IMG/VR virus record: IMGVR_UViG_3300031951_000003
Span: 248,001-312,000 of that record
Direction: 5' to 3' (one strand)
DNA length: 64,000 nt
In this document: positions 4,769-35,147 of the stretch, in pieces
How positions within the stretch are numbered: position 1 is the stretch's first letter
How the letters are laid out: every line of letters begins with the position of its first letter
The notes under the pieces: generated by a model
The model's database searches: none
Told to the model about the DNA's origin: nothing
The model's input: only the letters and a program-made list of their open reading frames with translations
Program-made: the position numbers and the translations under genes

Positions 4769-5589
4769 TCTGAGAATACAAGTTTTGGTGAGAATCTTTG
4801 GAAGGATTATGATTTCCCTTCGTTTCCACTTCCTTTTGAGAAGTAATCCTCAGTCACGGTCAATTAGATTAACCAATCCTTAAGTTGTGTACCACTCTCT
4901 CGTTACTCATCACTCTTCGAGGTTGCCACCCCAATTAATCCTTGCGGGATTAGAGAACTTTCAAGAAAATCCTGTCGGGCTTGGGACCCTTCAAGGCTAA
5001 GAACATCTCTTAACTATGTAGTGACCTGTCGCACACAACTGACGAGCACTTTTCCTTGTTTAATTTTGAGTTTGTTAAACCTTAATTAACAAAGTTGGTT
5101 TACGGATGATGAAAGTAGCGGCCCGTCTGAAGCCATGCCATCTTTTGGACGACACGATACTAAGCTACTCTCTGAAGTCTCCCGACCTCCATATTTTGAG
5201 TCAACTTCATAACTAACCTCTTGGTAGAGAGAAAGTTAAGGTTCCATCAGCACCACCTGTTATGAAACTTACCTTGTTCGGTGTTAAGCCAACTCTAATA
5301 TTGAATCACGCAATTACTATGGTGGATGCCATAGTTTCTTACATTAATCCTTCAGGTTATTCTTATTGGTGTTCCCACCTCAATCAAACGACCCGTATCG
5401 CTTGATTACCCAACCACGTTCCCTACAGTGTCACCCTCAGTACTAAAGGTCAGATAATATCCTGATTGCCTACTCGAGTTCCCTTTCGGAAACCGCAGAC
5501 CTCCCAAACCAGGGAGTTCCACTTTATACTATTTTCATAGTTTATTTAATGACCATAGGCGGCCAATATCTTGAACAGAATGTCTCAGA
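4769..5589 (-). ncRNA. large structured non-coding RNA, probably GOLLD-like
   Basis: No credible ORF; many hairpins closed by GNRA loops on the minus strand (GTTTCC-GAAA-GGGAAC, GGTG-GGAA-CACC, GAGGTC-GGGA-GACTTC, ACTAT-GAAA-ATAGT); two domains joined by an AU-rich linker; 7-bp terminal stem; own promoter and terminator; tRNA nearby. Confidence 0.7.
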
Positions 5590-5638
5590 ATAAACCCGAA
5601 GGTTTCATCATCAACTAACTGTGAAGATAATATCTTAA

Positions 5639-5650
5639 TTCAAAGAACTT
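5639..5650 (-). promoter_or_regulatory. boxA-like antitermination site
   Basis: AAGTTCTTTGAA between the promoter and the large RNA. Confidence 0.55.
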
Positions 5651-5728
5651 TCAAATTTAAAGGGAAGAAGAATCTTGACGACCATCCGAAGTTGGAACAC
5701 TTACAACTCCTCCCCTTCAATTGTTTCA

Positions 5729-5760
5729 CAAAGTTAAGACACGTTTTTGGAACTGTCAAA
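5729..5760 (-). promoter_or_regulatory. Bacteroidota sigma-A-type promoter P3
   Basis: TTTG-N20-TAACTTTG. Confidence 0.8.
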
Positions 5761-5842
5761 TCTTTTTGAAACTTTTTTTGACTTTTTCTGATTCGATTCT
5801 AATACCCCCCACTCTTAATGGGACAGGTTCAAATTCAGTCTT

Positions 5843-5869
5843 TGTCAAAGAACATACGACTCTCATCGT
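5843..5869 (-). promoter_or_regulatory. boxB-like hairpin plus boxA-like site
   Basis: ACGAT-GAGA-GTCGT hairpin followed by TGTTCTTTGACA. Confidence 0.55.
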
Positions 5870-5877
5870 GTGTTTTA

Positions 5878-5909
5878 CAAAGATAAGAAGGTTTTTTTAA
5901 ACTCTCAAA
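5878..5909 (-). promoter_or_regulatory. Bacteroidota sigma-A-type promoter P2
   Basis: TTTG-N20-TATCTTTG. Confidence 0.8.
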
Positions 5910-5920
5910 TCTTTTTTTTG

Positions 5921-5993
5921 TTGCGTCGCCTTGGAATCGAACCAAGCTAAGTGGGCTTATGAGACCCATGGAACACCTTGCCCCCCGCCCGCA
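5921..5993 (-). tRNA. tRNA with CAT anticodon (Met/fMet-like), aberrant acceptor stem, no encoded CCA
   Basis: T arm CTTGG-TTCGATT-CCAAG; anticodon arm TGGGT-CTCATAA-GCCCA; D stem GGGG/TTCC; acceptor TGCGGGC/GCGACGCA is imperfect. Confidence 0.75.
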
Positions 5994-5998
5994 ATATA

Positions 5999-6070
5999 AT
6001 GATTAACTCCTACTTACCCCTCGGTCACCTATCCACGTCATGCGCTGGTTGAACCAGCAGGAGTCATCAT
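5999..6070 (-). ncRNA. small structured RNA element of unknown type
   Basis: Closing stem ATGAT-GACTCCT...AGGAGTT-AATCAT encloses hairpin GCTGG-TTCAA-CCAGC; GC-rich; lies between a boxA-like site and the tRNA. Confidence 0.45.
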
Positions 6071-6114
6071 TTCAATATTTTTAAGAACTATGTTGTTTTG
6101 AAAAAGAAGTCCCA

Positions 6115-6146
6115 CAAATATACGGAGATTTTCTCAAATAACCAAA
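6115..6146 (-). promoter_or_regulatory. Bacteroidota sigma-A-type promoter P1
   Basis: TTTG-N20-TATATTTG; boxA-like AGTTCTTAAAAA at 6078-6089 downstream. Confidence 0.8.
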
Positions 6147-6276
6147 TTCGTGGGACTATTATTTCGAGATTACTCTTTTATTCATCTCGAGTGTTTGGGG
6201 TGTTCGTCCTCTCGGACATGAACATATAAATATTCCGAAAAGTTCAAAAAGTAACCCTAAGAAAAAATATTTTTTT

Positions 6277-6381
6277 TTAGTGGTCCAAATCGTCAACCAT
6301 TCTTCTGAGTTGTCTCATCATATCGAACCATCCTATGATTCCTATAACGATGACAAACATAATTAAACCTAATACAATCAT
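6277..6381 (-). CDS. small membrane protein (34 aa)
   Basis: MIVLGLIMFVIVIGIIGWFD...; ATGA overlap with the Nudix stop; not in the ORF track. Confidence 0.55.
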   Translation of the reverse strand: MIVLGLIMFVIVIGIIGWFDMMRQLRRMVDDLDH

Positions 6382-6797
6382 TGTAAAATAATTTCAGCTA
6401 ATTTATACATATAGTCACCTGTGTTTTCAGCACGGATTTCATCGAAACTGAAATACTTCCAATCAGTATGTTCTTCTCCGTCAATGGCTTTCTCGAAATC
6501 TGGTTCAATACATTCTTCAACAATTAACAAATACACATACATCAACCCTTTAACTTTTTTACCGTCACGAGTGTGTCTTGGAATGAGTCCAATAAAAGTA
6601 ATTTCTTGGTCATCGATACTAACCGCTGTTTCTTCGAAAAATTCGCGTTTGGCACCTTCTTGTGTTGTTTCATTTTCTTCGAGTTTTCCACCTGGAATCG
6701 ACCACATACCTGGGAAAGAACCGAGATTGTTTCTTTTACATAGTAAAACTTTATCCTTACATTTTACCATAATTCCTACATAGCTTTGTTGTTTCAT
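6378..6797 (-). CDS. Nudix hydrolase
   Basis: Nudix box GGKLEENETTQEGAKREFFEET. Confidence 0.9.
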   Translation of the reverse strand: MKQQSYVGIMVKCKDKVLLCKRNNLGSFPGMWSIPGGKLEENETTQEGAKREFFEETAVSIDDQEITFIGLIPRHTRDGKKVKGLMYVYLLIVEECIEPDFEKAIDGEEHTDWKYFSFDEIRAENTGDYMYKLAEIILQ

Positions 6798-6811
6798 TGT
6801 ATTTATTAAAT

Positions 6812-7159
6812 ATGATTGTTGAAATTAATGAAAATTATTTTAATGTTAAAACATTGGTTGACCCAAAATCCCAAGCTATTGGGATGATGAGAAGAAAATT
6901 CGATGATTCATTCAATGGTTTATTATTTTTAATGGGTGGTAAAAAACAATGTTTTTGGATGAAAAATTGTATCATCCCACTTGATATAATAATGATAAAA
7001 AATAATGTTATTGTCAATATACATCACGACTGTCCTCCTTGTTTAGAGGAACCTTGTCCGAGTTATTGTGGAAATGGAAATATCGTATTAGAACTCGAGG
7101 GTGGGACCTGTGAAATGTTAGGGATTGAAGCTGGAGATACGGTAGAATATATCTTCTAA
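6812..7159 (+). CDS. DUF192-family protein
   Basis: GMM..R...GLLF...FWMKNCIIPLDI...VLEL.GG...GDTV pattern; start revised to ATG 6812. Confidence 0.85.
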   Translation: MIVEINENYFNVKTLVDPKSQAIGMMRRKFDDSFNGLLFLMGGKKQCFWMKNCIIPLDIIMIKNNVIVNIHHDCPPCLEEPCPSYCGNGNIVLELEGGTCEMLGIEAGDTVEYIF

Positions 7160-15023: not shown

Positions 15024-16784
15024 TTAATCAATTCTCATTACGTAAAACCATTGGTCTTGAATTTTCACCTCATCAGCATTCCCATCGTAAGAATTAAGTG
15101 TTTGCCCAAATCCATCAGCATCTATCACCCCTTGTATAAATTCATCTTTGTCTATAAATTGTTCCCAGTCAATCCCATGCTCATTTAAAAAACCTTCGGG
15201 GTCTCTCATAACATCATCAACTAATTCATCAACTTTTTCTTCAACCAAATCATCAGGGAATTCTCCATCAGGGTCGTTCTCAATATCATCGATTTCATCC
15301 TGATATTCTACTATCAATTCACTTAGTTCATCTATTTTATCTTGAATCGAATCATCATCTCCCCCGTCCCCAATTAGTTCCTCAAATCTCTCAATTTCTA
15401 CTTCGGTTCTTTTTATTCTCATTTTGAGAATTTCGATTTCTTCTTTTTGTTTGGAAGATAATTGTCTCTCACTTTCATCCAAATAAACCTCAGGATTTTG
15501 ATATACATCGTCCCCTAAGTAGTCTCTTGCATAGTCCGCGACTTGTTCATCGTCAATGAAACCTCTCGCAAACCCACTACTGAAACCGCCATAACCAATA
15601 TCGTCAATTAATGAATCCACCCTTTCCTCACAACTTGATTGCATTTCACCCTCCGTTCCCACCGCATATTTTCTATCACTCAAACCTGCATCTATTACCT
15701 CAAATTCCGTGCAATCATAATACTCTCCTGTGGGTATTATGTTGTATACATCAATTTTTTCCTCTAATTCATTCAACTCATCCTCTAAGTCACTGATTTC
15801 GTCTAAAATGTCTGTTTCTACTTCCTCACTATTATCGTATTGGTTTTTAAGTCTCTCGATTTCATCTTTAAGTCTCTGAATTTCTATTCTGTCCTCATTT
15901 GTCAACGCTGAAACGTCACTTGTGTCAACCAACCAATCTAAAAGGGCGTGGGCTTTCAAACCCTCTTCAGGACAATCGGGACCAAGAGCCCATTCATTTT
16001 CCATCCTTCTCTCCTCAGCATCGTCTCTCATTTGCCTTAATATTCTTGCTTGTCTTAGTGCTTCTTGTCTCTCTTTTTCTTTTTTCGCGGCTTCTTTGTC
16101 ATTAAAAATCTTTATTTGTTCAGAATACTCTGAGTTCATGTATTCAGTTATCTGATTAATTATCTCATTGTATTTAGCGGTGCCCACATGAGCAGGATAT
16201 ATATTTGTTTGTTGGTCTGTGGCCGTGAAAAAACTTTTGTTACCGTCAAATTTGTTGAGCAAGGCTACTTTGTAGAATGGGTCAGATGAATCAGCACTTC
16301 TATCTAAAATATAAAACAATTTACCCTCTGTGTTATAATAATTGAATTGGTGGTCTGAACTTGCCACGGTGCACCACTTTGTTCCTTTACCGTAATAGCA
16401 TGAAGCCTGATGTGTTTGAGGATTCACAACAAAAAATCTTCCATCATCGAAAACAACTTTACCACCCTCAACTTGTTTATAATCTCTTCTTGGTCTGTTC
16501 GCATATTTTTGTAATTCATCACTGAGTTCGGAAACACTTTTATATGAATTAATATCAGTTTTAGGTAGGTTTGATGAAATCTTATCAAATTCTCTAAGTT
16601 TTCTGACTAAGTCTTGAAAGTTAGATTCAAAGTTCATCACCTCAAAGTTTTTGGCAACCCAATCCCAAAATTTTTGAGGAACGTTATCAATGATTTTTTT
16701 CAATTGCTCCTCAGAAAATTTCGTTCCATACTTAGCTTTGAGTTCTTCTGATTTGTTTTCTAATATTAATTCTAAAATTTTCAT
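15024..16784 (-). CDS. PcfJ-like 'YG..T.WCT' domain fused to a very acidic C-terminal region; probable head-packaged protein
   Basis: HQASCYYGKGTKWCT motif; D/E-rich C-terminal half; start at ATG 16784 (MKILELILE). Confidence 0.7.
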   Translation of the reverse strand: MKILELILENKSEELKAKYGTKFSEEQLKKIIDNVPQKFWDWVAKNFEVMNFESNFQDLVRKLREFDKISSNLPKTDINSYKSVSELSDELQKYANRPRRDYKQVEGGKVVFDDGRFFVVNPQTHQASCYYGKGTKWCTVASSDHQFNYYNTEGKLFYILDRSADSSDPFYKVALLNKFDGNKSFFTATDQQTNIYPAHVGTAKYNEIINQITEYMNSEYSEQIKIFNDKEAAKKEKERQEALRQARILRQMRDDAEERRMENEWALGPDCPEEGLKAHALLDWLVDTSDVSALTNEDRIEIQRLKDEIERLKNQYDNSEEVETDILDEISDLEDELNELEEKIDVYNIIPTGEYYDCTEFEVIDAGLSDRKYAVGTEGEMQSSCEERVDSLIDDIGYGGFSSGFARGFIDDEQVADYARDYLGDDVYQNPEVYLDESERQLSSKQKEEIEILKMRIKRTEVEIERFEELIGDGGDDDSIQDKIDELSELIVEYQDEIDDIENDPDGEFPDDLVEEKVDELVDDVMRDPEGFLNEHGIDWEQFIDKDEFIQGVIDADGFGQTLNSYDGNADEVKIQDQWFYVMRID

Positions 16785-16871
16785 CAAGTTTTCTTTAATA
16801 AATATCTTTTTTTAATTATAATTGGTTGGAAGTAATATTTATATAAATAAAAACTAAAAAATCTTTTTACC

Positions 16872-22110: not shown

Positions 22111-24532
22111 TTAAATTATCTTTTAAAATTTTTATTCTCTCCATTATTGAGATTATTCTTTTCTGTTGTTCTTGAAGTGCACCAATACCCAAACTTACCA
22201 TAAGACCATATTCAACTGATTTAAAGCCCTCCTCGTCTGTCCAAACAACTTCTGGGACGATATCTTCAATTTGCTGTGCAATAAAACCTATTGTTTCACC
22301 AGTAAATGCACTTGGAAGAGATATTGCACGGTTCATTGATATTTTAGGATGGTCAACCCATTCGAATCTAACACCCTCAATACCTTTAACTTTTTCTAAT
22401 ACATTTGTTAAGGATTGAATATTATCTTTAAGTCTTTGGTCTGAAGGTGGACCCTGAGCTCCTTGAGCTCCTTGACCTCCTGTTGGACCAGTTCCACCCT
22501 GAGGACCTGTAGGTCCTACGTTACCTTGAGCACCTTGACCACCTTGGCCCCCACCTGAACCTGTAGCACCTTGGGCACCTTGACCCCCTTGACCACCACC
22601 CGAGCCTTGAGCCCCTTGGGCTCCCGTAGCTCCTGGTCCTCCACCAGGCCCCACTGCTCCTTGGGCACCTTGTCCTCCTGTTCCTCCTGTAGGTCCTGTT
22701 GGTCCCTGTGCTCCTTGGAATCCTGTTGCACCTCCCCCTCCTGTTCCACCTTGAGCCCCAACAGGACCCTGAGCGCCTTGAGCTCCCTGAGCACCACCCT
22801 GTGCTCCTTGAGCACCTGTGGAACCACCTCCACCTTGGCTTCCTTGAGCACCTGTAGTTCCACCTTGAGCTCCTTGAGCACCTGTTGGTCCTTGAGCACC
22901 TTGGTTACCTTGTGCACCTTGGTTACCACCTTGAGCTCCTTGGGCTCCTTGTGAACCTTGGACACCAGGAGCACCTTGTGCACCCGTATTTCCTCCTTGG
23001 GCTCCTTGAGCTCCTTGTGAACCTTGGACACCAGGAGCACCTTGTGCACCTGTTGAAGCTCCTTGAGCTCCCTGAGCCCCTTGAGAGCCCTGAACACCAG
23101 GAGCTCCCTGTGCTCCCGTTGAACCACCTTGAGCTCCTTGGGCTCCTTGGGCACCCTGATTACCTGTCGCACCTTGGGCACCTGTTGAACCACCTTGAGC
23201 ACCCTGTGAACCTTGTGCCCCTTGTGCTCCAGTATTACCTTGAGCTCCTGTATTGGCTCCTTGTGCTCCTTGAGCACCTTGTGGTCCTTGTGCACCTTGG
23301 TTTCCTTGTGCACCTGTATTGGCTCCTTGTGCTCCTTGAGAGCCTTGAGCTCCTTGAGCACCTGTATTACCTTGAGCTCCTGTATTGGCTCCTTGTGCAC
23401 CTTGAGCACCTTGTGGTCCTTGTGCACCTTGGTTTCCTTGTGCACCTGTTGAAGCACCCTGTGCACCTTGCGCTCCCTGTCCTCCTTGTGAGCCTTGACC
23501 ACCTTGAGCACCTGTTGTTCCTCCTTGGGCTCCTTGTGCTCCTGTTCCACCTTGAGCTCCTTGACCTCCTTGTGCCCCCGTGGTTCCCCCTTGGGCTCCT
23601 TGAGCACCCTGTCCTCCTTGTGAACCTTGAGCTCCTTGGGCTCCTGTTGTTCCTCCTTGTGCTCCTTGAGAACCTTGTGCACCTTGTGCTCCAGTTGAAC
23701 CCTGAGCACCTGTTGTTCCTCCTTGAGCTCCTTGAGCTCCTTGTCCTCCTTGTGCCCCCTGTGCACCCTGAGCACCTGTTGTTCCTCCTTGGGCTCCTTG
23801 TGCACCTTGTCCTCCTTGGGCTCCTTGTGCACCCTGAGCACCTGTATTAGCTCCCTGAGCTCCTTGTGAACCCTGTCCTCCTTGTGCTCCTTGAGCTCCT
23901 TGAGCACCAATTGTTCCACCTTGAGCACCTTGAGCACCTTGTCCTCCTTGTGCACCTTGTGAACCCTGAGCACCTGTGTTAGCTCCTTGAGCACCTTGAG
24001 CTCCTTGACCACCTTGAGCTCCTTGACCACCTTGAGCTCCCGTATCCGCTCCTTGAGCTCCCTGTGCTCCCTGTCCACCCGTAGCACCTTGAGCTCCTTG
24101 AGGTCCTATCGAACCTTGTGAACCTTGAGCACCTACATTTCCTATTGCTCCCTTAGCACCTTGAGAACCTTGCGCTCCTTGAGCACCTATTGACCCCTGA
24201 GAGCCTGTAGTTCCTGAAGCACCTTGTGCTCCTTGAGCACCGGTAAATCCAGATATACCCTCAGCAGGTCCTACCCATTCGCCAACTTCATTAATCATTT
24301 CTATACCACCCACATACAATCCATATATTCCTCCGGTGACCTTTGCACCATCAACGAGTAATTCAGCTCCGATAGTTGCTATGTTACTTTTTGTTGTTGA
24401 TGAAACTTGGATATTTCCAGAACCATTAACAGATAATTGTATTTTGTCCGCGGATGAAATCCCTTCAAATTCCATATGAGGGTTAGGGTTTCCACCACTT
24501 TTACCATTGGGATATATTATAACGTCAGACAT
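22103..24532 (-). CDS. collagen-like fibre chain B (periodically interrupted) with S74-type chaperone
   Basis: ~605 aa of Gly-X-Y with about 20 Gly-X-Y-Z stutters; SDQRLKDNI; IGFIAQQ. Confidence 0.9.
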
Positions 24533-27156
24533 TAATTAAGAAGGTTTTCAAGTTCATTTATTTGTTTTTCGATATCTGATATAAATACTTGTTGCTCTTT
24601 AATACCTTCAATCAAAACGGCGTTCATTCTATTATATTCAACAGTATAAAAACCATCAGAACCGATTTTAACTACTGTCGGGAAAAATTCTTTAACATTT
24701 TGAGCTATCAGACCAATCGAGTGAAGCTTGTTATTGTTTAATCTTTTAATGTAATCGCTTTTCGTCAACTTTTCATTCCAATCGTATTCTACGACTCTAA
24801 GTTCAAGAATTTTTTCAAGTGTATTATCAAGTGATTTAACATTATATTTGACTCTTCTATCAGAGCAGCTGCCCCCGTATGTAAAATAACCATTGAAGTT
24901 AGTAGAACCATAATACAAATATGTAACACCAATCGTAATTGAACCATAGGTCCACTGAAATGTTGAGTTTTGACAAGTTGTAACATCTGAAGCGAGTTGG
25001 ATGCTAAAATTTGCTTGCCAGTTAATATCTTGGGAATAAACTGTTCTGTTTTGACATGCCCCCGCGTTTACACAAATGGCGTAATAAGAATCACCACATA
25101 GATTCTGAACAAAACAAGAGGTGAACGAGCCAGGTCCTGTTGCACCTTGTGCACCTTGGGCTCCTTGTCCTCCCGTAGGACCCGTAGGACCCGTAGGACC
25201 ACCCGACCCTTGTGCACCTTGGTTACCCGTAGGACCAGTAGGACCACCTGGTCCTTGTGCACCTTGGTTACCTTGAGGTCCTGTTACACCTGGTGCACCT
25301 TGAGCACCTTGACCTCCGTTTGGACCTTTCGGTCCAGCAGCTCCTTGCGCCCCTTGGCTACCCGTAGCACCCCCACCACCTTGAGGACCTTGAGCACCTT
25401 GAGCACCCTGACCTCCTGTTCCACCTTGTGGTCCTGGAGCACCTTGAGCACCTTGATTTCCTGTTGCTCCTTGTGCACCTGGATGACCTGTAGCACCCTT
25501 ACCACCCTGTGAACCCTGAGCACCTGTTGCTCCCTGAGGACCAATTGCACCTGTATTACCCCCTGCACCTTGTGCACCTTGTGGTCCTGTGGCACCTTGT
25601 GCTCCTGGATGTCCTGTTCCTCCACCAGAACCTGTTGGACCTTGTGGTCCTGTGGCTCCCTGTGCTCCTGGATGTCCTGTTCCTCCACCTGAACCTTGAG
25701 GACCTTGTGGTCCTGTGGCTCCTTGTGCTCCTGGATGTCCTGTTCCTCCACCCGAACCTGTTGGACCTTGTGGTCCTGTGGCTCCTTGTGCTCCTGTATG
25801 ACCAACGGCACCTTGAGCACCTTGAGGTCCTGTTGGTCCTGTTGCTCCTTGAGCTCCTGGATGTCCTGTGGCTCCTTGAGCACCCGTCGAACCTGCATTA
25901 CCTGTAGCACCTTGAGCACCAGGGTGACCTGTGTTTCCTGTTGGCCCCTGTGCACCTTGTGGTCCTGTAGCACCTTGAGCACCCGCATGACCCGTCGCAC
26001 CTTGTGCCCCAGTAGAACCAGCATTCCCCGTAGCACCTTGTGCACCTGGATGACCTGTATTTCCTGTTGGTCCCTGTGCTCCTTGTGGTCCTGTAGCACC
26101 CTGAGCACCAGCATGACCCGTCGCACCTTGTGGTCCTTGAGCCCCTTGAGGACCTGTAGCACCTTGAGGTCCTACTGCACCTGTAGAACCTGTAGGTCCT
26201 TGTGCACCTGTATTACCTGTGGCTCCTTGTGGGCCAACATTTCCTTGTGCTCCTGTATTACCTTGTGCTCCTGTGTTACCTGTGGCTCCTTGTGGTCCTA
26301 CGTTACCTGTAGCCCCGGTAGCTCCCTGAGCCCCTGTGTTACCTGTGGCCCCTTGTGGTCCAACATTTCCTTGTGCTCCTGTATTACCTTGTGCTCCTGT
26401 ATTACCTGTGGCCCCTTGTGGACCAACATTTCCTTGTGCTCCTGTATTACCTTGTGCTCCTGTGTTACCTGTAGCTCCTTGAGCACCTGTATGACCCTGT
26501 GCACCTGTATTTCCTTGTGCTCCTGTATTACCTGTGGCCCCTTGTGGTCCAACATTTCCTTGAGCTCCCGTGTTACCTTGCGCTCCTGTGTTACCTGTGG
26601 CTCCTTGTGCACCTGTATTACCCTGTGCACCTGTATTTCCTTGTGCACCGGTATTTCCCGTGGCTCCTTGTGCACCTGTATTACCCTGTGCACCCTGGGT
26701 TGTGCCTTTAGCACCCTGTGCCCCTTGGGGTCCAACCTGACCTTGTGCACCTGTATCACCTTGTGCACCTTGTATTCCTTGTAACCCTTGTGCACCCAAA
26801 TTTCCCTGTGCACCCGTATCACCCTGTGCACCTGTATTGCCCTGCGCACCTTGGTGACCCTGAGCCCCTTGAGCTCCTGCAATACCTGTGGTTGGTCCAA
26901 TCCAATCCAAAGTTCCATCAATTACTTGAACTGAGTCAATAGCAAAATAATCAGAAACATTAAGCGTTACAACACCAATTGTTTGGCTAGAACGGTCAAT
27001 AACTAATTGATTAGTAACTGATGCTGAGCTAAGATTAATCTTACCCGTTGGCACAACTCTCCAAACACTTGTTCCACTGTTAACCCAATTTATATAAGGG
27101 ACTCTGTCTGGTGTTCTAGAAATGGAATTACTCGGAACTATTAAAATATCACCCAT
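24532..27156 (-). CDS. collagen-like fibre chain A with a Cys-containing tip domain and S74-type chaperone
   Basis: ~586 aa of Gly-X-Y; 88-aa insert; SDRRVKYNV; IGLIAQN. Confidence 0.9.
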
Positions 27157-27256: not shown

Positions 27257-27970
27257 ATGACATTAAAAAAAATAGGTAGCAAATCTTACGTTGTAAACTT
27301 ACTTTCAGACTACATTCTTTCTGAGATATCAACTGAAGAGAACTCAATAATAAAAGTAATCGACTGTGGTAATTTTTTTGTTATCAAAGGAAAAACCACT
27401 TCAAAAGAAGTTTTATTTTTACCAAACATAATTTCTAAATTTAATGAGAGATTCGAAATACCCTCTAAACTCACCCATACAATTGACTTAATTGAATATG
27501 ATTCTGATTTACCTGATGTAAAGTCAATTTCCCACACATACCACAGTAATACCTCCAACTGTTCATATAATCAAACCGAAATCGAAAAAAATGAGATTTC
27601 CGAAGAAACTGATGAATTAGTATACGTTTCTTCATTTCCCCACGGTTATTCCCTAACTCAGGGTAGATTACTTTATTATTATGGGAAAAAAATATTCTAC
27701 AACATTCCATCCAATTACCTTGTCACGAGTTTGGAATTTCATCTAACAAATGAGAGAAATGATGAAAATGAATTTGGATTCAGCGTTTACGATGGATTTT
27801 ACAAAACAAAGGATGAAGTGCTTCGTTCTGCGGTCTTAGATATATTTGATTTCAATATGGAGCCAATCGCCAAAGAAATAAAAAAAGTGGATTGGAGTAT
27901 CGAACTCACAGACCCACTTTACGAATATGATTTTTTGAAAGAAAAGGTTGAGGGATTTATTATTATATAA
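27257..27970 (+). CDS. hypothetical protein, possibly a degenerate SAM synthetase (MetK)-like fold
   Basis: VVNLLSDYIL...FVIKGKTTS and LDIFDFN...ELTDPLY echo the MetK N- and C-terminal segments; catalytic motifs absent. Confidence 0.4.
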   Translation: MTLKKIGSKSYVVNLLSDYILSEISTEENSIIKVIDCGNFFVIKGKTTSKEVLFLPNIISKFNERFEIPSKLTHTIDLIEYDSDLPDVKSISHTYHSNTSNCSYNQTEIEKNEISEETDELVYVSSFPHGYSLTQGRLLYYYGKKIFYNIPSNYLVTSLEFHLTNERNDENEFGFSVYDGFYKTKDEVLRSAVLDIFDFNMEPIAKEIKKVDWSIELTDPLYEYDFLKEKVEGFIII

Positions 27971-28262
27971 TACCTAATTTTTTTCTGTGTCCTTGTATAA
28001 TTTGAATTGCCTCAGTTAATTCATTATAATTTCTTTCTGGAGCATATAAATGAGGTTCATAATCTTTATCGTCACCTTCGATAATCATCAAAGCTGGAAC
28101 CATGTCATTTTCCGTCACTTCAGAATACATATTATATTCTTTGGAATACTCATCGATGTCTCGTTCAAAGAAGTCTATGTTTTCGGTTCTCAACATTTTT
28201 TTGAATTCATCACAATGAGGACATCCTTTCATTGTGTATACTATAACGTTTAAATTTTTCAT
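27963..28262 (-). CDS. glutaredoxin
   Basis: VYTMKGCPHC, MVP. Confidence 0.88.
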   Translation of the reverse strand: MKNLNVIVYTMKGCPHCDEFKKMLRTENIDFFERDIDEYSKEYNMYSEVTENDMVPALMIIEGDDKDYEPHLYAPERNYNELTEAIQIIQGHRKKLGII

Positions 28263-28263
28263 T

Positions 28264-28587
28264 TTAATCTAAAAGATTTAATACTTCGGGTGCAGTCATG
28301 ACACCAGGTTTAGAAAACACCTCTTTACCTTCTTTAAATATTTTAATTGTTGGAACACTTCTGATTTGAAGTTCGTTTACGACATACTCTCTATCGGAAT
28401 CAATATCCAACTTATAGATTGAATACTTGGGTGAACTTGTTGACTCACTAATCAGGGATTCGTTCACCTTTTCGAGATTGTATAACATTATTTTACAAGG
28501 TCCGCACCATGTTGCAAACAAATCCAATACAAAATTTTCTCCGTTGTTAATTTTTTGTTTAAGTTGTTCCGTTGTTATCTGTTCCAT
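28264..28587 (-). CDS. trxA: thioredoxin
   Basis: FATWCGPCK, IRSVPT. Confidence 0.92.
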   Translation of the reverse strand: MEQITTEQLKQKINNGENFVLDLFATWCGPCKIMLYNLEKVNESLISESTSSPKYSIYKLDIDSDREYVVNELQIRSVPTIKIFKEGKEVFSKPGVMTAPEVLNLLD

Positions 28588-28918
28588 CTTTGAAGGGTTT
28601 TAAAAGTTGAGTTGTTAAAAAAACAAGTTCTTTAAATTGTTCAGGTTTATAATAAATAGTGAGTCCAAACTCATCTTCTCCATTTACGTTTATTGTATTA
28701 ACTTGAAGATAGAACTTTTGAGCTGTTTCGTAAATGACTTCCTCCCATTTAGCTTTGCCTCGGTTGGAAACTACTCCTCTCTCATAAACTCTCTTAAGTT
28801 TTTTTTCATCCAAATACTTGATTAAATCATCTGGATATCTGTGAAAATCCAAAAGGGAAAAAATACCTTCTTTTTTTTCTAATTGATTAATAAAATCTGG
28901 TTTACCTAAAAATCCCAT
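28559..28918 (-). CDS. hypothetical protein
   Basis: Operonic ORF. Confidence 0.7.
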   Translation of the reverse strand: MGFLGKPDFINQLEKKEGIFSLLDFHRYPDDLIKYLDEKKLKRVYERGVVSNRGKAKWEEVIYETAQKFYLQVNTINVNGEDEFGLTIYYKPEQFKELVFLTTQLLKPFKDGTDNNGTT

Positions 28919-30519
28919 GTGTAATAATTGTTTGTTGTTTTTCTCTCAGTCCAAATCAAGTTTCCATCATCATCAAAATGAGAACCTGAGGAAAGTTTGA
29001 TTCCGTTGTTACAAACTTTTTCTATCGAGACTGTTTCGAATTTTTTATCCTCAAAGCAAGATAAGACAACTTCATCTAATTTCAATAGAACCTTACTCCA
29101 AGATGAATCAAGTTTTTGATTGAATTTTCCTAAAGTTTGAACTCTATCCACATGTATTTTGTCTATATTTTTCAGAAAAACAATTCTATATTCAATCGTT
29201 GCTCTTTCTGTGGAATCAATTGAATTTTTTCTAAGTGAAATTATCATGGAACCCGCTTTACCAATATATCCTTTTACACAGTTGGATTGATTAAAACTTT
29301 CATGATTATATTCTTCACTAGTTTTCAATAAGACAGGAAAAAAATCATCTAAAGGTTTTTCGATTCTGTCATAAAAATACTCAGGATAAAGTCTTATGTA
29401 AGACCCTTTACGATAATGGTCCAATTTATCAGTCCAATCCAAGTGTTCTGCTTGGAATTTATTGTAATCATTACCATCAGTCGTCCACCTTGTTTCAGTC
29501 TCACCGAATTCTTTTAAGGAAGTGTAGGTTCTTACATGGTCATTAAATGTCCAATTGTTCATTGTGTCATTGAGAATCATTCCTTTAAAAACAGAATAAA
29601 CTTTTTTCAATTCTTCGTTGGAAAGATAATTTTTGAAATTATCAGGTATTGATATGGATTTCCCTTGAGAACTTAGAATTTCTTTGATGATATCACCATC
29701 TTGATTTAACCAATCCTCTCCGAATAATTTCTTAGCACAAGTATAAAGTTCAACATTGAGAAAATTTACTTCATGTAGATATTTTTTAAGTTTTTTTCCT
29801 TTAAAACTCCAAACTTGCATAAATGTATCAACAATTTTCTTGTCATTTTTTTTCAAGATTTTTCTGTAATCCTTACCCCACATGAAATTCACATAAATCC
29901 AAAAATTATTTGGATACTTGAAACCCTTTTTGTCCAAATAGAATTTCATTAATTTTTCATCATTATCCAATTTATCCAAATTTAAATCTATTCTTTCGAA
30001 GAATTTATTAGCAACTTCGAAAATAACCTCAGATGAGTTGTCACAAAAATTGGAGAGATGATTTTTGATACTTGACAGTATAGAGGAAAAAGGGTTATTA
30101 GGAAAATAATTTCTTCGTATGGATTTAGTGAATTTTTTTTTCTTTTGGTAATTGTGCAAATATCCTCTATAAAAATCGCCCGTCTTTTTGTTTACGGTTA
30201 GAAATTCAACATTTTTAGAGACTTTGAACCATGGCTTCCCAACCCCTCTGGCCTTTCCACCATAGAAAAATTTCAAGGATAATTTATCATCTTTTTCTTC
30301 AATTACAATCATACTGTAATACCTGTTTACAGCATAGATGGGGTTGGCAAAATTCTTTACGAATGTTTCCTCATCGTGAAATTTGTTTTCAATTACGAAT
30401 AAAGGATGTCTCAAGTCCTCTGTTTCTCCAAAAACTATATTCCTCTCATTCAAAGATGAGTGGTCTCTATATTTTTCAGAAATGAATTTTGTAAAATTTA
30501 CTTTATAGATTTCAGTCAT
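28906..30519 (-). CDS. PcfJ-like domain protein
   Basis: C-terminal HESFNQSNCVKGY...RATIEY...VQTLGKFN. Confidence 0.7.
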   Translation of the reverse strand: MTEIYKVNFTKFISEKYRDHSSLNERNIVFGETEDLRHPLFVIENKFHDEETFVKNFANPIYAVNRYYSMIVIEEKDDKLSLKFFYGGKARGVGKPWFKVSKNVEFLTVNKKTGDFYRGYLHNYQKKKKFTKSIRRNYFPNNPFSSILSSIKNHLSNFCDNSSEVIFEVANKFFERIDLNLDKLDNDEKLMKFYLDKKGFKYPNNFWIYVNFMWGKDYRKILKKNDKKIVDTFMQVWSFKGKKLKKYLHEVNFLNVELYTCAKKLFGEDWLNQDGDIIKEILSSQGKSISIPDNFKNYLSNEELKKVYSVFKGMILNDTMNNWTFNDHVRTYTSLKEFGETETRWTTDGNDYNKFQAEHLDWTDKLDHYRKGSYIRLYPEYFYDRIEKPLDDFFPVLLKTSEEYNHESFNQSNCVKGYIGKAGSMIISLRKNSIDSTERATIEYRIVFLKNIDKIHVDRVQTLGKFNQKLDSSWSKVLLKLDEVVLSCFEDKKFETVSIEKVCNNGIKLSSGSHFDDDGNLIWTERKTTNNYYTWDF

Positions 30520-30535
30520 TAGTATACAAATATAA

Positions 30536-30563
30536 TAAAAAAAGAAGGGAGAAAACTCCCTTC
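30536..30563 (-). terminator. intrinsic terminator
   Basis: GAAGGGAG-TTTT-CTCCCTTC followed by a T run. Confidence 0.8.
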
Positions 30564-30568
30564 AAAAA

Positions 30569-31324
30569 TTAACCACAATATGATTCAGCCAATTCCCAAA
30601 GACCGGTGTTGATTTTATTAATGGTTTGGAAGTTTTTCAATTCCTTCATTGTAACCAAACGACCTCTCTTGGATTGATATTTAGTTCCACCACGGACAAA
30701 TTTTTCTTGAATCACATTAAAGACTTTCCAAACAGAATTACCGCTATCAGCATCTCTCTCGGGACGAAGTAATTCTTCAACGTTTATTGAGGTAGGAACT
30801 GAACCTTTTTCCCAACGAAGGAGGGATGCCTTATTCATCATATCAATTGTTCTTTCTTCGTTGAGTTCTGTCGTTTCCATACGACCTACAGCTCTTTGGA
30901 TAAGTGGGAGACGGTCAGCGAACTCATCAGTGATTTGACGAACAACCCCCATGTCAACACGCATATGTTTAACAGAAATACTGTCAGCAACTGATGTTGG
31001 AACAGTAAGACCATTTGAGCAAACCAAACGGAAAAGACCGGCGCTCACTGAAAAGGTGCTCATGCCATTGTGTGAATTTCGAATCACTGCCTCAACCAAT
31101 GAATCTCCGACTTGAGGTAATTCTCCATTTCTTAAACGTAGTTCGTGACTCGAAAAACGACCTTGACCTATTTGTTTTGCGGAATAGAGTCTCCAACCTT
31201 CACGGTCAAAATTTTCCAAAATTTCCATGGTTGGAACGAAGGTATACTTCTCAGACATTTTAGGGTCTGCACTTGTAGAGAAAACGGCGGGAACTGTGTT
31301 ACGAATAGAATCGAGTGTAATCAT
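30569..31324 (-). CDS. DUF932/DUF945-family protein
   Basis: SEKYTFVPT...NSHNG...AGLFRLVCSNGL...WKVFNVIQE...LWELAE. Confidence 0.88.
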   Translation of the reverse strand: MITLDSIRNTVPAVFSTSADPKMSEKYTFVPTMEILENFDREGWRLYSAKQIGQGRFSSHELRLRNGELPQVGDSLVEAVIRNSHNGMSTFSVSAGLFRLVCSNGLTVPTSVADSISVKHMRVDMGVVRQITDEFADRLPLIQRAVGRMETTELNEERTIDMMNKASLLRWEKGSVPTSINVEELLRPERDADSGNSVWKVFNVIQEKFVRGGTKYQSKRGRLVTMKELKNFQTINKINTGLWELAESYCG

Positions 31325-31342
31325 GTTTATTAATTTAGATTA

Positions 31343-31372
31343 CAAAGATACAGTATTAATTTGAATTACAAA
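31343..31372 (-). promoter_or_regulatory. Bacteroidota sigma-A-type promoter
   Basis: TTTG-N18-TATCTTTG. Confidence 0.65.
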
Positions 31373-31374
31373 AA

Positions 31375-31653
31375 TTAATTTAAACAAACTAGACCAAATT
31401 TAGTCTTGAAGAAAGGTGCAAATAATTCTTTAGTTTCGATTGGTTTCTGATTAAGCTCTCTACACACGTCAATGAGTTGTTTCTGAGTTAAACTAACCTC
31501 TTTACCATTTTCGATATTATCAAAGGCTACCTCACGAATCTTTACATAAAATTCTTCTTCCTTGTCTTTTGGAATAAGATTAAATAAGTCTTTTGGATTT
31601 TCCTTGAAAAACTTGACGATGTTATTCATATATATGTCAACATCTACGCTCAT
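31375..31653 (-). CDS. hypothetical protein
   Basis: Start revised to MSVDVDIY to avoid overlap with the upstream gene. Confidence 0.7.
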   Translation of the reverse strand: MSVDVDIYMNNIVKFFKENPKDLFNLIPKDKEEEFYVKIREVAFDNIENGKEVSLTQKQLIDVCRELNQKPIETKELFAPFFKTKFGLVCLN

Positions 31654-31663
31654 AGTGAAATGA

Positions 31664-32986
31664 TTATTCCTCACCTTCCAAATCCCACATATTGTTACCC
31701 ATGTCACTACCTTTTCTTTTGATACATTCAGGAACTTGACAATTGTCACTTCCTTTCAGATTAATAAAGAAAAGACTCGGCATGTTACACACACATTCAG
31801 GGATAGAAGTAAGTTGTTTGTTATTAATAAGTGCTAAGAACTTCAACTTTGGTAATTCACAAATTGAATCGGGCACAGTTTCAACACAATTATCAAGTAA
31901 TATCATTCTCAAGTCTTTGAATCTAGAAATCGATTCAGGAATGTTAATAATAATATTATTTTTGTCTCTATTTTGGATTTGAAATTCAGTCAAGGTAGAT
32001 GGTAAGTTATCTATCAAATCGTCTAAACCATAAAGGGCAATGAATTTTCCAATTGCACCATGAGAAAAACTATCAATAACAAGTTTTTCACCTCCAACAG
32101 TCAAACCTTTTGCAAATTCTGGTTTGAATAACGGTTTCAATTCAGACATTCTTCCATTGAGTAGCCCAACTAAATCTTGTTGACGGTCATCCTTGTCCAT
32201 AAATTGATTGGATGGGAAATGGAATTGAAATCTTTCAACAGGTAAACCTGTTTCAGAGGCTTTGTTAGGGTCATTTGGATTGAACACAACATATAATGGA
32301 CCGTCCTTAATATATCTATCAAACCAAGACAATCCAGGTGCAGAAGTGCACCATCTAGTCTCTCTATTATTTCCACCGTAAAAACATGCGGCTTCTTTTC
32401 CTGATAAACCCTTGTCTTCAATCTTAATCACTCTCCAATCTTCACCGTCATACATGAGTTCAGCACCAGGGTGAACTTCGGCAGTTTTTCTTTCTGCTTT
32501 AGTTGTTGTTGCCATCGTAAGGTCGAAGTCTTTAACTTCGTCATACAATTGGTCAGGAGTCAACTTCATTATATCCCTTTTTTCCAAAGGAATACGTTTG
32601 TAAAATCTTCCGAATTTCTTCAAATCATCTGTAACCTTATACAGGTCTTCCAAGAATGTTTCCTTTACTTGAGCAAGTTCTCTTTCATAACCCGTATCAC
32701 CAGGTTGTCTTTCAGTCTTAACGTTCAAGAAACTTTTGATGAGCCAGTTAACATACTTACCTGCCTTTATTTTTTCAAGTTCTTTGGAGTCTGCACTCTC
32801 AGGGTCAACGTTATTTAATTTAGTGGTAGGGTCTGCCTGCACCAATTTTAAAAATTCAGCCACGGTCATCTTGGGCTTTTGTTTTTTTCCCTTCTTGTCT
32901 TCAGTAGGTTTTGTTAAAGCATTTCTCAAAATCTCAAATCTTGATTGCTCCAACAAAATATCTTTAAGTAATGATGTAAATTTCAT
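31664..32986 (-). CDS. 'YG..T.WCT' domain protein with C-terminal leucine-rich repeats
   Basis: AACFYGG...TRWCTS; IPESISRFKDLRMILL / VPDSICELPKLKFLAL.NN / IPECVCNMPSLFFINL. Confidence 0.75.
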   Translation of the reverse strand: MKFTSLLKDILLEQSRFEILRNALTKPTEDKKGKKQKPKMTVAEFLKLVQADPTTKLNNVDPESADSKELEKIKAGKYVNWLIKSFLNVKTERQPGDTGYERELAQVKETFLEDLYKVTDDLKKFGRFYKRIPLEKRDIMKLTPDQLYDEVKDFDLTMATTTKAERKTAEVHPGAELMYDGEDWRVIKIEDKGLSGKEAACFYGGNNRETRWCTSAPGLSWFDRYIKDGPLYVVFNPNDPNKASETGLPVERFQFHFPSNQFMDKDDRQQDLVGLLNGRMSELKPLFKPEFAKGLTVGGEKLVIDSFSHGAIGKFIALYGLDDLIDNLPSTLTEFQIQNRDKNNIIINIPESISRFKDLRMILLDNCVETVPDSICELPKLKFLALINNKQLTSIPECVCNMPSLFFINLKGSDNCQVPECIKRKGSDMGNNMWDLEGEE

Positions 32987-33030
32987 CTACCACGAATTTA
33001 TTAATAAATATATTGATTACACAAAAATAA

Positions 33031-33870
33031 CTAATAATTCAATATCAAGAGCTCTTCACCCATATTTTGTTTCGTCCCTTTTTTCGCAGCAGCTGCTTTA
33101 GCAAACTTCTTCTTTTCCCATCTGAATCTATCTGTTGAATACCATTGACTTAAAAGGTCAAAATCGTAGTAAGATAAACTAAACTTACTTTGGACTGAAT
33201 TCAACACATTTGCCAATCTTTCGTGGTCTGCTCTGTCGAAATCATGGTTGGAATAGTAATTTTCAGTTTTCCAATATGGTGGGTCCAAGTAAATATAAGT
33301 TGACGGGGAGTCGTATTTCTCTATAACCTTTTGGAAATCCATATTTTCAACATGAGTAATCTTATTAAAGTGTTCGACCCATTTTGGATTAGATAGTTTG
33401 TCTCTGAAAGACAAATATTTTGAACGATACTTTCCCTTCAAATCTATAAAGTTAGAAGTTTCAGGTTTACTTCCACTGAACACTTGAGTGACAATGTAAA
33501 CGTATTTTGCAGCAACTTCGTAGTCAGGGTAATTTATAGTAAATCCCGATGAAAATAATTCAGTTTGATACTCTCTGAATCTATCCTTGTAACTTATGTC
33601 TGTAACTAATTTACCAAACTCTTGAACCGGTATGGTGTCCAAAACTCTTTGGAGTTCAGCAGGATTCTGAACACATTGAAATAGATTGTAGTTTAGTGGG
33701 TTGAAGTCATTGTAGACCACTCGTTTGAGGTTTGTGAATTTTTCTAAATTCATGTTGAAATAACACCAAAACATTCCCCCGAATGTTTCGACATATGTTT
33801 CCATATCCTCAGGATAGTATTCGACTATCCATTTTCCAATTTTTGATTTTCCTCCGATATAACTTAACAT
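33031..33870 (-). CDS. dam: Dam-type DNA adenine methyltransferase
   Basis: YIGGKS, YVETFGG, VYNDFN, YLDPPY. Confidence 0.9.
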   Translation of the reverse strand: MLSYIGGKSKIGKWIVEYYPEDMETYVETFGGMFWCYFNMNLEKFTNLKRVVYNDFNPLNYNLFQCVQNPAELQRVLDTIPVQEFGKLVTDISYKDRFREYQTELFSSGFTINYPDYEVAAKYVYIVTQVFSGSKPETSNFIDLKGKYRSKYLSFRDKLSNPKWVEHFNKITHVENMDFQKVIEKYDSPSTYIYLDPPYWKTENYYSNHDFDRADHERLANVLNSVQSKFSLSYYDFDLLSQWYSTDRFRWEKKKFAKAAAAKKGTKQNMGEELLILNY

Positions 33871-33906
33871 ATAAGAAATATAATAAAAAAAATCAAAAAA
33901 GCAAAT

Positions 33907-34083
33907 TTAGTTATAACAATTTTTGTAAGGTCTACATGAAGCTTTCTGAGTAAATCCCATATCTGAGCATGATGTAGATTTACAATATGATTTACTATAT
34001 TTCCTTGGTTTCTTAAATTTCTTTTGTTCTTTCTCGTCCAAATATTGGTAAAGAACTCTTTTAATAATTTGTTCCAAAATCAT
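33907..34083 (-). CDS. small Cys-containing basic protein (58 aa)
   Basis: MILEQIIKRVL...YC...C..MGFTQKASC...C; not in the ORF track. Confidence 0.7.
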   Translation of the reverse strand: MILEQIIKRVLYQYLDEKEQKKFKKPRKYSKSYCKSTSCSDMGFTQKASCRPYKNCYN

Positions 34084-34093
34084 AATTATAAAT

Positions 34094-34234
34094 ATGGCAT
34101 GTAGTAGTTGTAAATCAAATCGTCCAATAAATAGAGTTAAATGGGGCGTGTTAATTTTAGGAAGTTATATTGTTTTCTCATCTGTTTACGGAACAATCGA
34201 AATATTCAAAATTATAATAGAATTTTTTAAATAG
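34094..34234 (+). CDS. small MACSSCK membrane protein (46 aa)
   Basis: N-terminal CxxC plus one TM; not in the ORF track. Confidence 0.65.
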   Translation: MACSSCKSNRPINRVKWGVLILGSYIVFSSVYGTIEIFKIIIEFFK

Positions 34235-35147
34235 GTCTCTCGAATTTCAAATTGAGTTTAACATAAAAATCACCACCTTTATATCCTTTTCCTCTTAATC
34301 TTAAAGGTTTAGATGTGTCTATTATTTTTGGTGCTTGTAAATTTAAATCACCATCTGGATGTGGAATTAAAAATTTATCATTTTGTATTTGTTCCAAATT
34401 CAGTGTCAAATTATAAACCAAATCTGAATTAATCTTTTCAAACCCATCTTTCGGGACCATTTCCACTTGAATTACCAAATCCCCCATACCTCCGTTTTTG
34501 AAATCACCCAAGTTTGGTAGTTTGAGAAACTGTCCACTATCAATACCTTGTGGGACTTTGACCCTAATGCTATGAATGGTCTGACTTGTTCCTTTTCCAC
34601 CACACAAATAACACCTTTCAACTAAAATGGTTCCTTGACCATTGCAGTTCCCGCAAATTGTCCTTATTTGTTGAACCATGAATCCTGTCCCAAATGTTTT
34701 GATAAAGAAACCTTGACCACCGCAAGACCCACAGGTTTGATGCTGGCCCCCGTTACCTTGACAAGAATTACACGGAATATCTCTACTATATTGAATTTCC
34801 TTTTCCCCACCCAAATAGGATTCAATTGGTGAAACTTGAAGTCTCACAACTTTGTCTGGTGCATGCCTCGGTCTTTGTCCTTGGAAATGAGGATTGCGAC
34901 CAAACATGTTATCAAAGAAACTCTCAAAATTGGTTCCTTGATATGGGTTGGACTTTTGATTATTATACTGAGCTCTTTTTTCTCTGTCTCCCAAAACTTC
35001 GTAAGCTTCGTTTATCTCTTTAAATTTTTCAGCACCATCGGGATTGATGTCAGGATGAAATCTTTTTGAGAGGTTTCTGTAACTCTTTTTGATTTCATCT
35101 TCTGAGGCATTCTCTTCAACTTCTAGAATTTTGTAGTAATTTTTCAT
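34227..35147 (-). CDS. dnaJ: DnaJ chaperone
   Basis: J domain with HPD, four CxxCxGxG motifs, C-terminal domain. Confidence 0.95.
   Translation of the reverse strand: MKNYYKILEVEENASEDEIKKSYRNLSKRFHPDINPDGAEKFKEINEAYEVLGDREKRAQYNNQKSNPYQGTNFESFFDNMFGRNPHFQGQRPRHAPDKVVRLQVSPIESYLGGEKEIQYSRDIPCNSCQGNGGQHQTCGSCGGQGFFIKTFGTGFMVQQIRTICGNCNGQGTILVERCYLCGGKGTSQTIHSIRVKVPQGIDSGQFLKLPNLGDFKNGGMGDLVIQVEMVPKDGFEKINSDLVYNLTLNLEQIQNDKFLIPHPDGDLNLQAPKIIDTSKPLRLRGKGYKGGDFYVKLNLKFERPI

Follow-up and report, generated by a model that had tools for sequence, protein, structure and literature searches.

A Trp-Cys-Thr module with a leucine-rich-repeat tail in a jumbo phage protein: one member of a large family with exchangeable C-terminal domains

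A stretch of 64,000 nucleotides (the window), comprising bases 248001-312000 of the virus record IMGVR_UViG_3300031951_000003, has been analysed around one gene, located at window positions 31664..32986 on the minus strand. It is an intact open reading frame (ORF) with an ATG start and encodes a protein of 440 residues, in which a conserved core, here given the name WCT module after its Trp-Cys-Thr signature, is joined to a C-terminal tail of leucine-rich repeats (LRR). The source record has a length of 321,139 bp, with direct terminal repeats and a G+C content of 35%. Its genome carries genes for a T4-type major capsid protein (Pfam Gp23, E 4.6e-62) and for a prohead protease of the gp21 type (Peptidase_S77, E 1.5e-22), which makes the phage a jumbo myovirus whose head machinery is T4-like. 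The gene is one member of a large, uncharacterised family of jumbo-phage proteins that share the WCT module. Thousands of metagenomic homologs are equal to it in length, with more than 3500 clusters (90% identity) matching the protein at E<=1e-3, the best 120 of which are 75-86% identical to it and 436-441 residues long.

The WCT module is a two-lobed unit of about 250 residues, extending approximately from residue 45 to residue 300. Its conservation has been counted on the alignment A3, which comprises 126 diverse domain pieces, and an AlphaFold2 (AF2) model of residues 1-305, with a predicted local distance difference test score (pLDDT) of 91.2, shows a helical lobe up to about residue 168, followed by an alpha/beta lobe. 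The helical lobe (residues 14-170; 32477..32947, minus strand) is basic, with an isoelectric point (pI) of 9.15, and contains the conserved positions D52-P53-T54, W81, E113-D114, L122 and D138-I139. In the alpha/beta lobe (residues 171-300; 32087..32476, minus strand), delimited from the AF2 secondary structure and devoid of any PDB fold match, strands are predicted at residues 176-180, 185-189, 231-235, 252-256 and 261-263, and the conserved positions are A199, G204, T210, Y225, L231, K/R252, Q254, H256, D264 and D267. The model arranges this lobe as two strands, a helix, the loop carrying the WCT signature, another helix and three strands, which bear Q254 and H256 and lead to D264 and D267, with further helices following. 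The signature itself, W212-C213-T214 (codons at 32345..32353, minus strand, checked by translation), is present in 126/126 pieces, and C213 opens a short helical turn in the model. Candidate partners of C213 are Q254 (123/126), H256 (118/126), D264 (108/126, with Asn in 16 others) and D267 (121/126), whose codons lie within 32186..32227 on the same strand. Conservation of at least 90% is reached by D52, P53, W81, D114, L122, D138, A199, G204, T210, Y225, L231, Q254, H256 and D267. All the elements by which the family is recognised occur in the 440-residue protein: the DPT, W, EDxY and KDI(N) motifs, then [ST]-x-W-C-T, followed by QxH and D..D. Conserved polar residues in such number, distributed over both lobes, are what one would look for in an active site or a ligand-binding site more than in a packing core. 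An earlier reading, made from the sequence only, had proposed a core with conserved cysteines; this holds for C213 of the WCT signature, which is invariant, whereas C201 of the neighbouring AAC stretch is replaced in many relatives.

Residues from about 331 to 430 (31697..31996, minus strand) form a genuine LRR solenoid of four to five repeats. Three full units of the IPESI..L..L..L.L.N type can be read directly at residues 349-366, 371-389 and 395-412, flanked by degenerate units, in keeping with the tandem units of 20-30 residues with an LxxLxLxxN/CxL core that define the LRR superfamily. A phmmer search of PDB sequences matched residues 331-424 to LRRD1 (E 1.3e-14) and to Leptospira LIC LRR proteins (2e-13). 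The Pfam models LRR_8 (21.3 vs 27 bits) and LRR_14 (20 vs 40) match below their gathering scores, and in NCBIfam the XopAC, XopAE and XopL models match through their LRR parts only, with E-values from 2.5e-10 (XopAC) to 2e-6. An AF2 model of the full protein, built from 50 homologs (mean pLDDT 89.3), contains five regularly spaced parallel strands at residues 334-338, 361-365, 383-387, 407-409 and 427-430, and its top Foldseek matches in the PDB are all LRR solenoids (NRG1, LRRC8A, LIC12234, SHOC2, XopL, InlB), with a probability of 1.00 and an rmsd of 2.2-4.5 A over 90-130 columns. Sequence units, PDB sequence search and structural search are therefore in agreement on the C-terminal LRR that the sequence-only reading had described, and the solenoid it expected is present in the model. 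The repeats are reached through a connector (residues 301-330; 31997..32086, minus strand), modelled as a short strand and two helices, which is the best-conserved stretch among close orthologs (pairwise identity 0.97 for residues 301-320). Over 120 close orthologs the mean pairwise identity is 0.88 for the alpha/beta lobe vs 0.79 for the LRR, so that conservation is even across the protein and a hypervariable LRR can be ruled out, its conservation being only slightly below that of the core. As close orthologs are so evenly conserved, exchange of the tail appears to be an old process at the level of the family, and not an ongoing diversification. The LRR-tailed subfamily is itself broad, comprising about 50 representative clusters with 26-61% identity, nearly all of which have the same short C-terminal LRR.

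The WCT module occurs five times in this genome. A profile built from metagenomic relatives only, with no paralog from the genome included, was searched against the 1132 frames of at least 60 residues in the genome and detected the gene itself at E 1e-73 and a second gene in the window, at 15024..16787 on the minus strand, at E 3.7e-26. Three further paralogs were found outside the window, at positions 129730-131262 (3.2e-32), 162226-163260 (6.3e-18) and 237772-239340 (1.2e-10) in the numbering of the source record (G000:C1). A direct BLASTP comparison of the 440-residue protein with the product of 15024-16787 also gave a match, at E 7e-06, over the C..YG..T.WCT stretch, and together with the independent profile this confirms the paralogy that had been suggested between the core and the N-terminal part of that second protein. 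The latter has 587 residues, with the WCT module at about residues 37-229 (16101-16679; WCT codons 16368-16376) and an acidic tail of 358 residues (230-587; 15027-16100) containing 31% Asp+Glu, with a pI of 4.05; it matches PHROG 17056 and PHROG 28193, both of unknown function. In this paralog the YQFHF strand motif has become YKVAL, with Gln and His gone (Leu for His), and in the 344-residue paralog at 162226-163260 it has become KFAGY, with Tyr for His and the WCT signature kept; judging from these changes, the two may be inactive or repurposed copies. The paralog at 237772-239340 (minus strand) has ICT for WCT, keeps Gln, His and Asp, and has MORN_2 repeats at its C-terminus (Pfam E 1.2e-10). 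The C-T of the signature is retained in 5/5 paralogs. No two tails are alike: LRR, acidic, MORN_2, a C-terminal region of about 260 residues that is unassigned, and a short tail. The proposal of swappable C-terminal modules on a shared core is borne out by these five tails, as well as by the repeat partners found across the family.

Beyond this genome, an exhaustive search with residues 95-300 recovered 2013 representative clusters (50% identity) at E<=1e-3, of which 331 reach 1e-10 and 47 reach 1e-30. Family members range from about 250 to 1844 residues and contain one to five tandem modules, the proteins of 800-1844 residues having two to five copies. Their partner domains include LRR, WG_beta_rep, DUF4116, Ank, HEAT, LRV, MORN_2, the PolyA_pol head domain and DUF6919, the PolyA_pol nucleotidyltransferase domain being present in one family protein. 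A shape search of the ESM Atlas returned viral (Uroviricota) clusters only, with LRR, WG_beta_rep, DUF4116 or LRV tails. When the canonical paralog was searched by tblastn, matches were obtained in eleven records of PA5oct-like Pseudomonas phages, in Salicola phage SCTP-2 (six places) and in Caulobacter phage CcrBL9, so that the matches in cultured phages were to jumbo phages only; a tblastn search of 50,697 phage records with the whole 440-residue protein gave no match. A pattern scan of one genome for each of 185,579 prokaryote species identified at least 13 loci, mostly on short contigs of Bacteroidales metagenome-assembled genomes, with one on a Thiomicrorhabdus chromosome; this count is a lower bound because a single peptide pattern was used. 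Two more distant members have different neighbours: a five-module relative of 1844 residues, on an 18-kb ENA metagenome contig (L023, 1080-6759), adjoins genes for Cas6, a Cas7fv-like protein and a DEAD-helicase, which may belong to a phage-borne CRISPR-Cas system, and another adjoins two large lysozyme/amidase proteins.

At the 5' end of the gene, codons 1-13 (32948..32986, minus strand) encode an N-terminal helix of the form MKF..LL..hhE, which ends in E13, conserved to at least 90% in the LRR subfamily (alignment A1). Similar N-termini recur across the WCT family. Upstream, 24 nt before the ATG and within the 44-nt gap after the Dam methylase gene, lies a putative promoter element, TATTTAT (33004..33010, minus strand), identified by a genome-wide motif count. 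This heptamer occurs within 60 nt upstream of 106/370 crude gene calls, compared with 31 for its reverse complement. Its distances to the ATG peak at 10-14 and 20-24 nt, and it falls into two sharply separated distance classes: class I (53 genes) at 9-14 nt before the ATG, and class II (35 genes) at 19-27 nt, followed by an A-rich leader. Class II includes the gene under study, its paralog at 15024-16787, the prohead protease and a collagen fibre gene, and the element precedes 4/5 WCT paralogs (for example upstream of record positions 129781, 239337 and 264784 in G000). The leaders after TATTTAT are very short, with no evident Shine-Dalgarno sequence. PHROG annotation of ten genes in the 20-24-nt class returned no functions, and hence no early or late assignment.

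The gene order around the locus is DnaJ, D12-class adenine methylase, the WCT-LRR gene, a 92-residue ORF, DUF932, a PcfJ-like gene, a 119-residue ORF, thioredoxin, glutaredoxin, a 237-residue ORF and a collagen/S74 gene. The same order is found in the window and in two relatives (L021 and L022, 86% identity), with all genes on one strand except for the opposite 237-residue ORF; distant family members have other neighbours. The block at 27963-35147 (minus strand) includes a DnaJ with all three of its domains, the D12 methylase, DUF932, the PcfJ-like gene, thioredoxin and glutaredoxin. Elsewhere, DUF932 and PcfJ typically occur in conjugative elements. The 92-residue ORF (31375..31653, minus strand) starts 10 nt past the stop of the LRR gene, keeps its position in L021 and L022 and has no Pfam match; a GTG-start reading of 124 residues (31375..31749, minus strand) would share its first part with the final 86 nt of the LRR gene, while the ATG at 31653 gives 92 residues, and relatives call a gene of 106 residues at this place. 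The PcfJ-like gene (28906..30519, minus strand; 537 residues), 1.1 kb downstream of the WCT-LRR gene, is a conserved neighbour which reaches E 0.022 and 15 bits with Pfam PcfJ, vs a cut-off of 25. Further along, 24532-27156 (minus strand) encodes 874 residues, nearly all collagen Gly-X-Y (Pfam Collagen E 1e-73), with a C-terminal Peptidase_S74 intramolecular chaperone domain, and looks like a fibre protein.

Two observations were made elsewhere in the record. Directly upstream of a WCT paralog, G000:C1:126060-129335 (plus strand) encodes a full-length protein of 1091 residues that resembles a TonB-dependent outer-membrane receptor; it starts with what looks like a signal peptide and contains CarboxypepD_reg (E 4e-17) and an OMP_b-brl_4 barrel (E 6e-53). 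Receptors of this type are typical of Bacteroidota, which hints at the host; the gene itself may be auxiliary or may result from a chimeric assembly. A second paralogous family is formed by three large proteins of 1433, 672 and 495 residues (G000:C1:309776-314077, 69804-71822 and 5456-6943; the first lies in part within the window, as 61776-64000), which have in common PHROG 15511, of unknown function, at E 4e-13 to 3e-19.

Searches of curated families and of solved structures for a relative of the core have been negative. No family from Pfam, NCBIfam or PHROGs was matched by the core of the 440-residue protein, a profile search of PDB sequences returned nothing, Foldseek against the PDB reached a best E-value of 0.34, and VIA-align against 48,161 chains found nothing above background. 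A new fold is not claimed on these grounds, because the helical lobe (residues 1-168) was barely sampled by the fold searches. Among the weak Foldseek rows, GNAT/MYST acyltransferases and hotdog thioesterases are enriched, with values that lie within background; as no acetyl-CoA motif is conserved in the core, this is a lead only, and membership in the GNAT acyltransferases, with their GNAT fold and pyrophosphate-binding motif, is not supported. The order C213, H256, D267, with the helical turn that starts at C213, would fit a papain- or transglutaminase-like thiol enzyme as far as sequence order and AF2 secondary structure go; a papain-like fold for the core was considered and rejected. An effector of the NEL type (IpaH/SspH) was likewise rejected, since neither Pfam nor NCBIfam gives a match beyond the LRR and the order of the domains is reversed. 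In a fold search of BFVD the family itself was retrieved at E 4e-30 to 2e-4, in uncultured Caudovirales, 'Marseillevirus'-labelled metagenomic bins, CcrBL9, PA5oct and Myoviridae ctWb16. No curated family, solved relative or literature description of the module was found in the searches made.

With a probability of roughly 0.45, the proteins carrying this module are best read as a modular phage effector family, in which a thiol-dependent core is combined with a swappable target-binding tail and which is possibly packaged in the virion. The proposal draws on W-C-T, kept in every aligned piece together with the largely conserved Gln, His and Asp, on the confident AF2 models, on tails of repeat types that bind proteins, and on the even conservation of the whole protein, LRR included, and of its gene order. 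Under this proposal the WCT module would supply a conserved activity, most likely catalysis by the C213 thiol aided by H256 and D264/D267, and the C-terminal repeat domain would pick the protein to be acted on, which from the architecture is expected to be a host protein. In the five paralogs the phage would then have a single activity aimed in five different ways. A homolog in Pseudomonas phage PA5oct suggests by analogy that the protein may be produced late, become packaged in the virion and enter the cell along with the DNA. This homolog, EST35_0205 (QCG76086.1), matches the profile at E 9e-47 and is recorded as 'structural protein, ESI-MS/MS' (electrospray ionisation tandem mass spectrometry), and it adjoins three other PA5oct proteins annotated in the same way. 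The packaging step is proposed from this mass spectrometry note and from the T4-type capsid protein and gp21-type protease of the present phage. The paper on PA5oct reports 93 virion-linked gene products and does not discuss EST35_0205. There are precedents for such a route: in T4, a capsid targeting sequence serves to package diverse internal proteins that counteract the defences of the host (PMC3012670), and the prohead proteases of T4 and of giant phages cleave behind a Glu, which in ejection proteins is often among the first 15 residues (PMC5694885). That residues 1-13 might be a propeptide removed after E13 is only an idea drawn from this analogy. Polyvalent proteins have also been predicted to be injected with phage DNA (PMC5512222), in a paper that makes no mention of the WCT module, PcfJ, DUF932, LRR or MORN.

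Several observations weigh against the effector proposal. Virion association has been recorded for a single distant homolog, about 30% identical, and as a database note only; a genome-wide pattern search for a shared N-terminal capsid-targeting motif matched this gene alone. The His is lost in 2/5 paralogs and the Trp is replaced by Ile in 1/5, and from the loss of His it follows that those two copies are inactive or that the His is not catalytic. The grouping of C213, H256 and D264/D267 is a candidate one, read from sequence order and conservation. Lastly, the LRR of close relatives shows no diversification, and at that scale an arms race is not apparent. The most specific form of the proposal, in which the WCT module is an unrecognised thiol-enzyme fold with no counterpart among solved structures that is packaged, injected and aimed at host proteins through exchanged LRR, MORN, WG, ankyrin and HEAT tails, is regarded as unlikely in its entirety.

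Among the alternatives, a distant link between the WCT module and the PcfJ superfamily survives best. It was raised by the sequence-only reading, which took the neighbouring PcfJ-like gene for a possible distant third member of the family. For that gene the suggestion is not supported: BLASTP found nothing, the core profile gave E 0.29, and hhalign returned probabilities of 0.14% (full) and 0.10% (domain slices); the protein lacks the WCT signature and has SNC in its place. The Pfam PcfJ model searched against the whole genome also returned nothing, and the 440-residue protein had no PcfJ match at E<=1. A faint likeness nevertheless recurs for the module itself. Of all Pfam families, PcfJ alone is matched by at least three of the isolated core pieces (5/126, E 0.009-0.1), and it is the top one for them; fourteen phage proteins annotated as PcfJ occupy ranks 19-47 in BFVD, with E 2e-4 to 0.1, a best probability of 0.98 and low TM-scores of 0.2-0.25, and a search for a solved PcfJ structure found none; and PcfJ clusters stand on top of a language-model search, with scores of 0.90 and 0.89. 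One full-length relative matches Pfam PcfJ at E 3.3e-6, through either the core or a separate domain; neither a scan of seven long proteins nor a local motif and profile search located this relative again. The PcfJ-like and DUF932 genes are, moreover, conserved neighbours. On this evidence it is plausible, though less likely than not, that the WCT module branched off early within the PcfJ superfamily and shares the role that PcfJ has in conjugative plasmids and phages, which may be to help incoming DNA to establish; such a descent would be compatible with the effector proposal and with either of the rivals below. All the PcfJ signals, however, lie under a curated or conventional threshold, and membership would explain little, as no function is known for PcfJ.

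The chief rival places the protein in the virion as a structural component or adhesin: the WCT module would anchor it to the particle or help in assembly, and the repeat tails would be displayed to bind ligands on the host surface or in the environment, in the manner of decoration proteins or of accessory fibres whose anchor is constant and whose tips vary. The virion annotation of the PA5oct homolog, in its run of structural genes, agrees with it, and paralogs with a constant N-terminal and a variable C-terminal part have the classic layout of receptor-binding proteins. There are six Cys in the last 140 residues (301-440), the closest LRR sequences include the extracellular Leptospira LIC proteins, and the collagen-repeat/S74 fibre gene lies 4.5 kb away on the same strand. 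An invariant W-C-T with conserved Gln, His and Asp would, however, be unusual for a mere anchor, and tandem arrays of two to five modules or a fusion to PolyA_pol fit an anchor poorly. The AF2 models show no trimerisation or beta-helix features, and the immediate neighbours (Dam methylase, DnaJ, DUF932, PcfJ-like, thioredoxin and glutaredoxin) are non-structural. On balance, a structural role is considered improbable. Less probable again is the second rival, a non-packaged, non-enzymatic adaptor inside the cell, whose module would bind a conserved component (nucleic acid, nucleotide or polymerase) while the tails recruit partners: the basic helical lobe, the lack of an enzyme fold match for the core, the fusions to RNA-related enzymes (PolyA_pol, and a BFVD protein annotated as glutamate--tRNA ligase) and the loss of His with retention of WCT in two paralogs, which is easier to reconcile with a binding site than with a catalytic triad, would all agree with it, but where a Cys is invariant over so many clusters, chemistry or metal binding is a more usual reason than docking, and the PA5oct virion record argues for packaging in at least one lineage.

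The interest of the family lies in its setting, since each jumbo phage has hundreds of genes of unknown function. With 2013 clusters, up to six places in a genome and no Pfam model, the WCT family is among the larger unannotated families in these phages and deserves a domain model in the family databases. Its sharp signature and clean grammar, with one core and interchangeable protein-binding repeats, make it an exceptionally convenient object of study. Should the core prove to be an enzyme that enters the cell with the DNA, large phages would have in this family a general means of taking over the host or countering its defences, and new protein-modifying activities could be drawn from it; a virion adaptor would instead account for the display of many different binding modules by these phages. 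Should the full reading hold, with a packaged and injected thiol enzyme aimed by exchanged tails, the family would be the phage equivalent of the bacterial LRR-enzyme effectors and would occur in thousands of environmental phages.

Among the closest known systems is EST35_0205 of PA5oct, also a jumbo myovirus, which has the same WCT module (DPT, EDVY, KDIN, GKGTRWCTA, QFH..QWMD..D) and differs in its low overall identity (about 30%), a C-terminal half without LRR and a single copy vs five here. The PcfJ proteins of PF14284, known from plasmid pCF10 and many phages, resemble the WCT module through weak and recurring likenesses in sequence, fold and embedding, and both reside on mobile elements; there is no match at the Pfam cut-off, and the profile-profile comparison with the PcfJ-like neighbour is null. 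With the T4 internal proteins, Alt and the polyvalent proteins the family shares a concept, that of effector domains carried in with the DNA, and no sequence relation. This phage likewise has a T4-type head and prohead protease, and the multi-copy family members of up to 1844 residues resemble polyvalent proteins (PMC5512222). The bacterial LRR-enzyme effectors (the IpaH/SspH NEL ligases, XopL and XopAC) follow the same logic, with LRR targeting joined to a catalytic domain, which in NEL uses a Cys. They differ in that the LRR alone matches, that the LRR is C-terminal here and that a phage protein has no type III secretion, so the likeness is an analogy of design and not membership. The design of an effector core joined to targeting repeats thus has precedents among the LRR effectors of bacteria, the internal proteins of T4 and the polyvalent proteins; in the present family the WCT module takes the place of the core.

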